Positions 29,901-42,305 of a stretch of DNA of 64,000 nucleotides are shown here, in pieces (position 1 is the stretch's first letter; each line of letters begins with the position of its first letter). The DNA is taken from NCBI RefSeq assembly GCF_036321535.1, contig NC_087451.1, positions 15,376,001 through 15,440,000 of the forward strand, given 5' to 3'. The stretch is from Camelus dromedarius (lineage: Eukaryota). The position numbers and the translations under genes were made by a program. Under the pieces are notes generated by a model. The model saw only the letters and a program-made list of their open reading frames with translations. It made no database searches and was not told where the DNA came from.

Positions 29901-31012
29901 GCATTCCGTCTCTCTCCAAGTCTCAGTTTCCCCACCTATTAAGTGGAGATACAATAATCATCAAACCACCTATAAAATCATATATTAAGATAACCAGTAT
30001 GAATGAAAGAGCTTTATAAATAGGGAACTATACAATCTCAAAGGCTGGAAAAATTGCAAAATACCTTTGGAAGGTAATTTTTCACAGTATCAAAAGCCAT
30101 AAAGCTGCATCCTCATTGGCCTGGGCATCCCACTCACAGAATATATCCTGTGACAGGAGTTTCCACTCTTTTCCTATCAGTCCATCCAGAGTGTTTCCAT
30201 GGATGGAACATCCCTAGCTTATAGGCTGAAGCCTGTGTAAGATAGGATGTGGACTGTGTACCATTTCCATTTCTTTGCCACTCAAGGAGACACATCCCAG
30301 GGAAGGATGTTATTCTGGGAATCGTTTGGATTAGGTAAATAATTGACCAAATATAGCATATCACTTAGTAATAAGTTGTTTGCCAGTTCTGCAACCCCTC
30401 AAGACACCTCAGCATCTTGGCATTCAAGATGAGAACTGCCATCCTTTTGAAATAACTCAAAGAATGAAAAAGTGTATATACCTATATGTGGGGCAGCAAT
30501 GGCAGTAATAAATCAGCTCTTTCATATCCATTCTCTTATTGCCCTTCTTTAAGGTCCTGTGAGGTAGACAGGAGGGATTTATACTTCCTGTCTCCAGGTG
30601 GAGCCATGGTTTCACATCCATGCAAAGTAAGTTAAGAACCAACAAGCGTGATGGAAGGACTCCCTGCTTGGGGTCACGTGACTTGAACCTGTAACATTTT
30701 CAGGCTGTGATTCCTTGGGCGTGTGACTTCAAATCTCTGGGTGTCCTTTGACTCAAATTGCTTCCAGAGTTACTGAGTGGTTCAAATGGGGTACTGGCCA
30801 CGATGCACTTTAAGAAGTAAACAGTGCACAAAGGTGGCATGCCTTAGTGTGCTGACTCCCTGAGCTGGGACCGATAATAATGCTTTAGGTCCAAAAAGTG
30901 GCCTTCCCTTTATCCACATACGTTAAGCAACACCCTAGAATTTCTGGTCAGTCTTCATGGTGGCACATCTAAGGCAAGGAAAAAACATGATCATAACAAG
31001 GTAAAATAAATA

Positions 31013-31018
31013 TTTATT
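31013..31018 (-). terminator. Polyadenylation signal of the TRPV3 3'UTR
   Basis: AATAAA on the minus strand about 2.5 kb past the TRPV3 stop, in an AT-rich context. Confidence 0.6.
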
Positions 31019-33490
31019 AGAAATCATAAAAGAATGTCTTCAGTGGCACTATAATACTCCTGTTCCATTTATGACTTCTTTTTTGAACATAGAGTTTCAC
31101 ACAGACACAAATAAGAACAAGTATTTAAATTAGAATTTGCACAGATCAGGCACATTCGATGAGAACAAGGGGACAAGTCTGTGTTTGGGACTAAGATGAC
31201 AGTAAAAACATGTAAGTCAATGCAGAAATCAAGTGTGGCTTACAGGCCCAGATGACTGCCCACCGACCTGGGCCCCGCCCAGAGCAAAAGGCCTTCACCA
31301 GGCCTTGAGGAAGGAAAAGAAGATCAGTAACACTGGGCTCTCAGGCAGGAGCCCCTCTAACAGCTTAATGACTTCACAGTACAGCCTCAAACTCCTTCTC
31401 CCATAACCCAGGGAAGAAGGTAAGCACCATTTTTATTCCAAACAGGTATATCACATAATGTCTAGAATAATGGATTCTTCCTGAGGCAAAGTTTAGCTAA
31501 AGGGAAGGTCCCAGCCAAAACTGTTATCTGAGTAGGGGAGATTCCATCCCTGGAACATGCCTTCCCCTTTAAAGTACTGCTACATGTGTCATTTAAGATG
31601 TCCTGATACACCCGTGAATTCAGTGTAGCGTGGTGTGTGTGTGCACACACTTGAATTTTAAACCAATCGTAACGATCATAGGGACAATGTAGACTGTCAG
31701 CACGAGTTACCTGAGCAGAAAGCCCTAGCCCCCTGACATACGCCAATCACAAAGGCAGACTCAAACTTACTGAATAACTGTCCTAAAAAAAAAAAAAAAA
31801 AAACCACACAGGGGGACATCTGTGGTCCAGAATCAGAACCTCTGGCTTCAACAGCTCTGAGACAACCTCCTGCGTAACTCAGACAAGTCCACTTTCCTTT
31901 CAGGGCTTTAGTCTCCAGGTGTAAATAAGAGAACTGGTCCTTTGGAGCCAATGCCCTTTGACGCCTTGCTTCCCTTGGCAAACCTATCCAGGCTGAGACC
32001 ATCCAGGCTGAAAGCCTTTGGGGGATGCCACTACTAGGAAGAATATCCCAGTACGGAAAAGGGTCCTGCCAACAAATTCCATCCAGATCCTCAGACAGCA
32101 GTTCTTCATGTGTAAGAAGACAAAGACCCCGTTACTGATCTCTGTCTGTCTAACCTACCAGCTTTTGTTCAGGTGGGAAATGGAGAGCCATACGGCTTTA
32201 TCCATTCATATCTGAATCAGAACAGTTCTGAATTCCCAGCTCCATGGTGCCCTGGCTCCAAACAGCTGCCCTTCAAACCAGGGACACCTTTTCAGGATAA
32301 CTTCAAGTAGGTAACTCCAGATGCAGGATGCTGATTTCCAGGCCGAGAGGACCTTCAAGTTCATCCAGTTGTGATCTTTAACAACATCCCAGTAAGTGCT
32401 CAACCAGCTTCTGCAGCTTTTTCGTACGCCTTTTCCTCTGCTTCAAAATTCACAGTTAACAAAAATAGCTAATACCAGAGAAGTTCAGGTATTTTGTTAA
32501 ATTCTTCCAATGAGAAATACTGATGTACAGGAGTAACCTCTGAGATTCAAGACCACGTAAACAGAGCAGTTGCTGTTTCTGTTTCGGATAAAGCCACAAT
32601 CCCAGCGTGGAAGCACGCACTGTAGCAGGGCTGGGACAAGGCAAAGAGCCAAGATCTTTCACTCAGATTGCAGGCCCTGCCTGCTGTGTCTCATGTGGAC
32701 TTCTATGTGCATAATGAAAAGCTTTTTGTCCAGCTTGTTCTGGCCACCCCAAGGCCAAGTATATAACACTTACATCCAGCCCCAAATCCTAAAATCTATT
32801 TCTCAGCTTTTAATAATCACATACTTCATCTGAAGTAATTTTCATGCAAAACTGAAATGATCTTTCTCTATTGAAAAGAAAAACCCCATGTTAATTATTC
32901 TACTAAAAACATCTCTCAGTGTGAGACAGTTTGAGCCTTGAGTACCAAGGCTACTCATTTCAAGGTTGTATTCCTGCTCCCTGAAGGTTCCAGAAACTCA
33001 TTCCCCTCTGGCCCCTGGGGTGGGATTGAGAGTCCCTTAAATCCAGGAGACCCAGTCACAGTACAGGAAATGGTGGAATGTATTCACTGGGGTGGGAGAT
33101 GTCAAGATGTTGGCAGGAGGGAAGAGTCCTCTCCCTGCTCCTCCAGCCCCTGCCCTTTCCCTGCCAATCCTCTCTCCCAGCCACATCGACCTGAAGTTGG
33201 GGAACACACGGACTTCAATCAAAATTCGGGATTCCTGGGACTCCCGGGTCAGGACTGCTGGCCGTGCGTTTATACAAATTCTTTGCCGAGTGACAAAATC
33301 CAGGGTGTTTCCCGCTCAGGCAAACTGACAGCTGCCCCCGGGTTCAGCCACCTGCTCAGCATGAGGGTGCCTTCCTTGTCTCTGTTAGCAGAGCCAGGCT
33401 CCATCACCCTGCAAAGCCCTGAGCACCGAGTCGAGGACCCAGCCTGCAGCATCAGACAGCCCACTCGCACACGAGCTCTGGGTTCTGCTT

Positions 33491-33588
33491 CTACACTGAC
33501 GTTTCCGGAAATTCATCGATTTCATCAAATGCATTGAGGGTGGTTTTGCTGTTGCTCCTGGGAGAATCTTGGAGTTTGTTGAAATCTG
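33491..33588 (-). pseudogene. TRPV3: TRPV3 exon 18 coding part (intact)
   Basis: (A)[31 protein letters not shown]; tandem aag/cag NAGNAG acceptor. Confidence 0.95.
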
Positions 33589-40214: not shown

Positions 40215-41179
40215 CTGCGGACAGGCCGGGGGTGGGAGGGGGCGCTCAGCGGCTGGGAGCCGGGGTGACACAACCTCTCTGGCCTTTTCCCCTCTCTGGC
40301 CTCCACACCCTCCACGGACCCACGGAGAAATACTAGCCGCCTGTCGGGTCTGTGTCGCCCAGCTACCAAGAGTCCCAGCTTCATTCTTTGCTTCAATCTT
40401 GCTGGGAAGCAAGGATTATTTAGGGAGCATCTGCTCTGTGCTAGGGTCCAGGCGCTGGGGATGCAGTGAGACACGGGATGCAGTTTTGATTCTTGTCCTC
40501 CAGAAGCTCACCATCTCACTGAGAATGAAGCACTATGATACCGGAGGTGCAGGGGCTGTGGTGCCCAGAGCAGGGGCTCTTAACATGGACGGGTTGGGGG
40601 GCTTCCCAGAAGGGGCCTCTAACCTGGGACCACGTAAGTTTACGGAGGGTGGATGGGGCCAACTCAAGGCCTCATAAGCCAGGTGAACAGATGAGAACGT
40701 TATCCTAAGGACCATGGGAAGGCACAGAAGGCACTGAAGGAGGGAAGTGACATGACCACAGTCTTGGGTTTTGTGTGTGTGTATTTTTGGATCACTCTGG
40801 CTGCAAAATTGGAGGATACACTAGGAGCCCAGAGTTGTGAGGAACTGTCCAGCCCGAGGACCCAAAGATCCTTAGGAGAGTCTTTAGGATGGCCTGTGGG
40901 GGTTGGGGGAGAAGGGGAGTCTCAGGTAAGATCCAGGTGTCTGGCCTGGGTGCTGGGTGGCTGGTGCCTTTGTGACTAAGAAACAAAATAGGCGAGAAGC
41001 ATTAGGGAGAGGGAGGAGGGACTTTAACCCTGTTGTTGGAGCCTACAGAACCTCCAGATGGAGGGGACTGGAAGGCTGGGGTGCGGGGTCTCAGAATGTC
41101 CCACCAGAAACAGCATTTTTCAAAGAGCTGCCACCATGCCACACACACAAAGAATAAAGTCCTGGTGGACTAAAAACTA

Positions 41180-42155
41180 AGCATTTTTAAAGTCTGGAAA
41201 ATTGTTTATAACTGACCTTCTGGCAGGGAAAACTTTCTGAAGCAAAATCCAAAATGCAGAAACCATAAAGAAAAAAATGGACAGATTGACAGTCTGCTTA
41301 CATAAAAATTAAAAGTTTCTCTATTTCAAAAGATATCTTAAAGGACAAGCAATAGGCTGGAGGAAATATCTGAGATGTATGAAAGAGGCAATGTGTGTTT
41401 CAAAGTCCACAGTAGATGAGGAGCTCCTACAAATCAATAAAAAAACAACCTAAAAGAGAACTGAGAGAAGATTAGCAAGAAGCACCTCACAGAGAAGAAG
41501 ACACACCCAGCCAATACAGAAAGTGCAAGGTGTTTGGAATCACTGGTGATCAGCAAGATGAAGATTTGAACCTGAGGAGTTAACACTTTTCACCTATTGG
41601 ATTGACGGTATGTATCTTGGCAATACAATACTGGCAAGGATGCATGCTTTTGTACTCTTGTGTGGGGGGAGAGTAAATTAGTACTTTTTGCAGGCAAACT
41701 TGGGGCAATAGCCATTGTAATTTTAAATATGCATGTCCTGAACCCAGAGAATCCAGTTCAAAGTGCTTTCCTAAAACATGTATGCACGGTGCAAGGGTTA
41801 CAGACAAGACTATGCACTGCAACGCTGTCATCGCAAAACACTGTGAAGCACGTGGATGTCTGCCATCGACAGGGGAATGTGAAATCACCCCCTTGCAGCC
41901 GTCTTCAGACTAAGCAGGTGAAAAGGAGGCAGACTTTTATATTCTGATATGAGAAGGCATTTAAAACATATATTTAATTCCCCCAAATCAAATTGTAGAA
42001 CAATACAAACAGCACAATACATAGGTAGATAAGTGAATAAATAAAACTGTTCCTATGTGCACATACACACTTATGTCGAAAGTCTAATATAGTCATCATC
42101 TCTGGAAGGGAGAGTGGGGAACAGGTGAAGGTTTTCTGGTTTTGTTTTTACTTAA
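41180..42155 (+). mobile_element. L1ME-type fragment in TRPV3 intron 6
   Basis: aaaaaaatggacagattgac...aaaattaaaagtttctct...aaatcaataaaaaaacaacc L1 ORF2/3'UTR pattern; ends abruptly at the SINE. Confidence 0.75.
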
Positions 42156-42159
42156 TATA

Positions 42160-42305
42160 GGGGAGAGGGTATAGCTCAAGATAGAGCACATGCTTAGCAT
42201 GCACGAGGTCCTGGGTTCAATCCCCAGTACCTCCACTGAAAAACCAAATCAACCTAATTACCTCCCCCCCTGCAAAAATAAATAAATAGTTTTAAAAAAA
42301 GAAAT
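42160..42305 (+). mobile_element. tRNA-derived SINE, camelid-type
   Basis: ggggagagggtatagctcaag...cttagcatgcacgaggtcctgggttcaatccccagtacctcc...aacctaattacctcccccc plus an A-rich tail. Pol III A and B boxes present; resembles the recalled camelid SINE consensus. Confidence 0.85.

Follow-up and report, generated by a model that had tools for sequence, protein, structure and literature searches.

A 64,000-nucleotide stretch of the dromedary genome (Camelus dromedarius; assembly GCF_036321535.1, contig NC_087451.1, positions 15,376,001 to 15,440,000), here called the window, carries a broken copy of the warmth-sensing channel gene TRPV3 next to ASPA. The initial annotation of this sequence had read the copy, referred to here as psi-TRPV3, as a lineage loss of TRPV3, provided that the species is a camelid and has no other copy. 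The comparisons described below make it very probable that psi-TRPV3 is instead an unprocessed partial-duplicate pseudogene lying in a duplication-rich interval, and that TRPV3 itself has not been lost. In the dromedary assembly CamDro3 (GCA_000803125.3), a working TRPV3 with all of its coding exons adjoins TRPV1, and the broken copy is found at a separate locus; the gene-loss reading is therefore unsupported. The initial annotation had itself named an intact TRPV3 elsewhere in the genome, with the window copy as a decayed partial duplicate, as the finding that would overturn its proposal, and this is the arrangement found in CamDro3.

Exon content and lesions of psi-TRPV3

Mammalian TRPV3 proteins were searched against the window, which contains no N, using tblastn, and lesions were read from a base-level alignment to the intact dromedary locus (L001). 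Six TRPV3 exons (7, 8, 9, 16, 17, and 18) and their introns were identified on the minus strand between 33.5 and 40.2 kb, and their numbering in the initial annotation agrees with that of the 17 coding segments identified in the dromedary gene. Exon 7 lies at 40075 to 40215, and exon 8, which encodes ankyrin repeats (residues 262 to 356), at 37974 to 38254 (tblastn match, 38252 to 37965). These are followed by exon 9 at 35748 to 35921 (match, 35924 to 35748), exon 16 at 34979 to 35091 (match, 35094 to 34978), exon 17 at 33827 to 33908, with approximate ends (match, ∼33906 to 33827), and exon 18, encoding the C-terminal residues ∼760 to 791 and the stop codon, at 33491 to 33589 (match, 33589 to 33494). 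The tblastn results were complemented by alignment to L001 and, for all but exon 7, by translation. An open reading frame (ORF) of 147 amino acids covering exon 8 (37932 to 38375, minus strand) matched solved TRPV3 structures across residues 262 to 358 (E value, ∼1e−49), well above its matches to TRPV4, TRPV2, and TRPV1. For residues 1 to 214 and 415 to 695, corresponding to exons 1 to 6 and 10 to 15, no tblastn match was obtained in the window even at an E value of 50.

The disabling changes described in the initial annotation could all be read at the positions given there. A TAC codon in exon 9 has become TAA (35843 to 35841), a CGA codon in exon 16 has become TGA (34992 to 34990), and the splice acceptor of exon 8 has changed from AG to AC (38256 to 38255, minus strand). 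The substitutions P275S, R337W, and G352D are present among nine private amino acid changes in exon 8. In-frame deletions were also confirmed, but their number and size were not; rather than three deletions of 3 nt, one of 3 nt was found in exon 9, accompanied by ∼9 substitutions, and one of 6 nt in exon 17, accompanied by K-to-N and H-to-Q changes. Exon 18 is open and carries two substitutions. In all, ∼20 private amino acid changes were counted in psi-TRPV3. When exons 7, 8, 9, 16, and 18 were compared with the consensus of seven outgroup mammals, the window copy differed at 26 of 268 positions and L001 at 7 of 268. Relaxed constraint is thus confined to the window copy, whose coding exons, exon 7 aside, evolve as if unconstrained.

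The absence of exons 10 to 15, also noted initially, is due to a single clean deletion of 8.5 kb relative to L001 (L001 32747 to 41262; residues ∼415 to 695). Its junction, at 35423 to 35427 on the minus strand, carries a 3-nt TAC filler. The missing exons encode the pore and every transmembrane helix, so this copy cannot give rise to a channel. A functional TRPV3 orthologue would comprise 17 coding exons (2 to 18) with an open frame and canonical splice sites, a description that does not fit psi-TRPV3, which is presumably without function as a gene and unable to encode a channel.

Intact and broken TRPV3 loci in CamDro3

Protein searches led to two C. dromedarius TRPV3 models, of 1,030 (P0152) and 179 (P0277) amino acids, on one 55.65-Mb chromosome of CamDro3. 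A library of representatives at 50% identity had given only odd TRPV3 isoforms; usable references and both dromedary models came from a word-index search. No RefSeq camel TRPV3 proteins were present among the cluster members listed.

The locus of the longer model, L001 (CM016642.2:11254982-11308015), contains the 3′ end of TRPV1 followed by TRPV3. All 17 coding segments, covering residues 1 to 791, are present without stop codons and share 77 to 100% identity with seal TRPV3, so that L001 holds an apparently intact TRPV3 adjoining TRPV1. BLASTN alignment of the window to L001 revealed homology only at L001 20756 to 32746 and 41263 to 53034, at 94 to 97% identity. The individual matches paired L001 20756 to 25395 with window 42242 to 37635 (95.5%), L001 26396 to 32746 with window 41785 to 35427 (95.8%), L001 41263 to 42524 with window 35423 to 34201 (93.8%), and L001 42550 to 53034 with window 34243 to 23759 (97.2%). 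This collinearity extends through the introns and 10.5 kb of downstream flank, and exactly two stretches are missing from the window copy, namely, the deleted segment with exons 10 to 15 and everything upstream of L001 20756, which includes exons 1 to 6, in L001 10001 to 20755, and TRPV1. The end of homology at window position 42242 places the break in intron 6, as proposed in the initial annotation.

Within L001 20756 to 32746, the segment with exons 7 and 8 occurs twice, around a gap of 1,000 N. The two copies are 97.8% alike (2.2% apart), exon 8 is intact in both, and the annotated 1,030-amino-acid protein reads through both. This repeat could be a real internal duplication, or it could reflect contig ends mixed from different paralogues.

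The locus of the shorter model, L002 (CM016642.2:11379172-11403635), lies ∼71 kb from L001 and holds the same wreck as the window. Its positions 1 to 7520 align to window 28605 to 21059 (97.7% identity), 8521 to 15047 to window 41785 to 35234 (97.1%), and 15073 to 24464, in the opposite orientation, to window 234 to 9713 (91.7%, rich in indels). The second of these pieces spans the deletion junction found in the window, with its TAC filler, and L002 shares with the window the AC acceptor of exon 8, the TAA in exon 9, the 3-nt deletion, and the changes V to L, M to T, R337W, and E to K. Of the informative site patterns, which are blocky, 36 group the window and L002 against the two L001 copies, and the alternative groupings are represented by 11 and 9 sites. 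The initial view of a copy beside ASPA that has long been dead and bears several independent lesions is supported, as is its assignment of the animal to the camelids. As assembled, L002 is a shuffled patchwork of window pieces separated by N gaps, an arrangement that looks like a scaffolding error.

Another possibility weighed was that psi-TRPV3 stems from misassembly or false haplotig duplication of one real TRPV3 locus. The region is rich in duplications, and CamDro3, assembled independently, is plainly a mosaic in this interval, as such an artifact would lead one to expect. However, the window is gapless, a separate assembly shows the same lesions and deletion junction, and haplotype variation does not account for a divergence of 3 to 4% accompanied by stop codons and a deletion of 8.5 kb. 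An assembly artifact is accordingly regarded as highly improbable. Introns and flank collinear with the parent were found, as expected of an unprocessed duplicate, and in CamDro3 an intact parent (L001) occurs on the same chromosome as the broken copy (L002).

Paralogue types, divergence, and proposed origin of the duplicate

Overall identity between the window and CamDro3 ranges from 95 to 98%, with the differences unevenly spread. Across window 28605 to 23759, the 3′ part of ASPA, sites that vary between the window, L001, and L002 fall into successive runs of 53 window-only, 20 L001-only, ∼18 L002-only, 16 window-only, and 18 L001-only sites, and only ∼5 window-private sites in ∼2.9 kb lie outside these pure runs. 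Such runs mark two paralogue types ∼3.5% apart, between which the CamDro3 contigs switch; the switching could stem from chimerism in a short-read assembly or from gene conversion. Outside the paralogue-switch blocks, same-type sequence of the window and CamDro3 is ∼99.8% identical, and the two therefore derive from the same or nearly identical species. A lamine (alpaca or llama) orthologue was considered as the source of the 95 to 97% identity and rejected, as nearly all of the differences are confined to pure paralogue blocks. The two types extend through ASPA exons 5 and 6 and the ASPA-TRPV3 intergenic region (window 21059 to 34243; L001 42550 to 53034; L002 1 to 7520); they are the same at the protein level in exon 6 and differ by one residue (C/S) in exon 5.

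Within TRPV3, sites private to the window, to L001, and to L002 are intermingled, and the dromedary data contain at least three sequence types of the exon 7-8 segment. The window, L002, and the two L001 copies agree at every base of exon 7 and the 30 nt on each side of it (window 40045 to 40245; 201 nt), and their neighboring sequence is 2 to 4% apart; either gene conversion or a slowly evolving stretch could account for this. The same identity, together with the blocky site patterns that gene conversion would give, is what favors the idea that the fragment has been kept for some use, whether as a transcribed noncoding RNA or as a donor or acceptor of gene conversion for the working TRPV3. Such retention is nevertheless very doubtful, since short-read chimeras in CamDro3 explain the blocks equally well, the copy has neither a promoter nor 5′ exons, and its other coding exons show no sign of constraint.

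The broken and intact TRPV3 copies have diverged by ∼3.4 to 4.2% and, being 3 to 4% apart, cannot be alleles. This bears on the alternative that psi-TRPV3 is a unitary pseudogene, that is, the sole remaining copy in a camel that truly lacks an intact TRPV3. In favor of a unitary loss, the fragment, next to a complete ASPA, occupies the ancestral position and carries several old lesions, the intact copy was seen in CamDro3 and not in the window's own assembly, and a 1-bp insertion has been reported in TRPV3 of C. ferus (Wu et al. 2022, PMC8931706). Against it, a complete, open TRPV3 and the wreck occur together in an assembly that is nearly identical to the window outside the paralogue blocks, the two copies are not allelic, and four camelid genomes yielded a complete or at least ∼90%-complete coding sequence (PMC8931706). 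A unitary loss is for these reasons considered very improbable.

Several points also weigh against a partial duplicate with an intact parent. CamDro3 is unreliable in this region, as the gapped patchwork at L002 illustrates. Over TRPV3, the window is ∼2% divergent from L002 and the private sites of the two are intermixed; they may represent two distinct pseudogene copies, both descended from one ancestor that was already broken, instead of a single locus. The exon 7-8 repeat in the "intact" gene of L001 may be a real internal duplication. Finally, the intact TRPV3 was seen in CamDro3 only, and in the window's own assembly it should lie beyond the end of the window.

The partial-duplicate reading remains the best explanation, and the sequence suggests how such a copy may have arisen. 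A segmental duplication in the camel lineage would have copied at least 21 kb, from within ASPA, via the shared intergenic region, to intron 6 of TRPV3. The alignments to L001 and L002 give the duplicated block a minimum extent of 21059 to 42242 (ASPA exons 5 and 6, the intergenic region, and TRPV3 exons 18 to 7), the lower limit being set only by the ends of the dromedary loci compared. At the upstream end lies a tRNA-type camelid short interspersed element (SINE; 42162 to 42288, minus strand) that is also present in intron 6 of the parent. Homology to the parent ends at the boundary between the SINE body and tail, and SINE-like sequence runs ∼46 nt further on the window side, which suggests a SINE-mediated junction. 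There the copy would have come to abut a mosaic duplicon with a leucine-rich repeat (LRR) N-cap exon. The copy has never possessed exons 1 to 6 or a promoter. Exons 10 to 15 were then removed by the single 8.5-kb deletion, the acceptor of exon 8 was destroyed, and the two stop codons, the in-frame deletions, and the ∼20 amino acid changes accumulated. At substitution rates of 1 to 2.2e−9 per site per year, the observed divergence would make the duplication roughly 8 to 17 million years old, and it could either predate or postdate the separation of Old World camels from the llama and alpaca.

ASPA occupies 11750 to 26996 on the plus strand, and all six of its exons are open (exon 1 at ∼11.75 kb, exon 2 at ∼15.2 kb, exon 3 at ∼16.85 kb, exon 4 at ∼19.4 kb, exon 5 at ∼24.2 kb, and exon 6 at 26.82 to 26.996 kb). 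It and psi-TRPV3 are adjacent and arranged tail to tail. On the other side, no TRPV1 was found in the 22 kb upstream of psi-TRPV3, which are occupied by an unrelated duplicon. Internal duplicates of at least 250 bp were not detected within the window. An ORF at 52565 to 52945 (plus strand) begins like a signal peptide and contains a Cys-rich LRR N-cap motif. It had initially been labeled a mini-LRRC37 in a mosaic duplicon spanning 42310 to 64000; weak LRR N-cap features alone were found here, with only weak LRRNT-like matches (best score, 0.86), and seven ORFs from 42 to 60 kb gave no Pfam match. A more elaborate scenario, in which an LRRC37-type duplicon made the camel ASPA-TRPV3 interval prone to repeated duplication and left it with three or four copies of exons 7 to 9 converting with the working gene, is speculative and rather unlikely. 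If it were true, the live TRPV3 could acquire disabling variants from the dead copies, which could also confound camelid gene-loss and association studies.

Comparison with other TRPV3 lesions and implications

In its structure, psi-TRPV3 does not differ in kind from other unprocessed segmental-duplication pseudogenes. Like them, it has kept its introns and local flank (the 3′ end of ASPA), is truncated within an intron, here at a SINE, has, in CamDro3, an intact parent nearby on the same chromosome, and has acquired stop codons, a splice-site loss, and a deletion. Decay of TRPV3 is known from cetaceans (Wu et al. 2022, PMC8931706), in which the same gene carries premature stop codons and splice-site mutations. 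In those unitary pseudogenes, however, a single syntenic gene has decayed with no intact copy left, whereas the dromedary keeps an intact parent, and the window copy lacks 12 of 18 exons through truncation at duplication and one deletion. The same study counts C. dromedarius, C. bactrianus, C. ferus, and Vicugna pacos among the species whose TRPV3 coding sequence was complete or no less than ∼90% complete; the only camelid it flags is C. ferus, for the 1-bp insertion, and it reports no relaxed selection. That insertion is likewise a camelid TRPV3 lesion discussed for heat tolerance, but it lies in an otherwise complete coding sequence under purifying selection and not in a fragment of the window type.

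In alpaca, a TRPV3 Glu475* variant has been proposed for suri fleece (Pallotti et al. 2024, PMC10873959). A copy of the window type cannot be the source of this variant, because Glu475 is encoded in exon 11, which is deleted there. A V. pacos TRPV3 model of 764 amino acids (P0220) omits exon 9, continues into intron 8, and shows four nonconservative changes in exon 8, none of these peculiarities being shared by the window copy. Paralogues may be mixed in alpaca assemblies too, or alpaca may have its own TRPV3 variant. Neither PMC8931706 nor PMC10873959 mentions a duplicate TRPV3, and both the C. ferus insertion and Glu475* were called without mention of TRPV3 paralogues; the papers found contain no mention of the present camel copy.

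The window copy is an ordinary duplicated pseudogene of a kind already known, and its identification has no bearing on camel thermosensation itself. Its relevance lies in the attention that TRPV3 has received in work on heat tolerance of the wild Bactrian camel (PMC8931706) and on fiber type of the alpaca (PMC10873959), and in the mixing of paralogues in the ASPA-TRPV3 interval of a published dromedary assembly. Gene-loss screens or short-read variant callers that meet the fragment beside ASPA would wrongly score camel TRPV3 as lost or as bearing stop codons.

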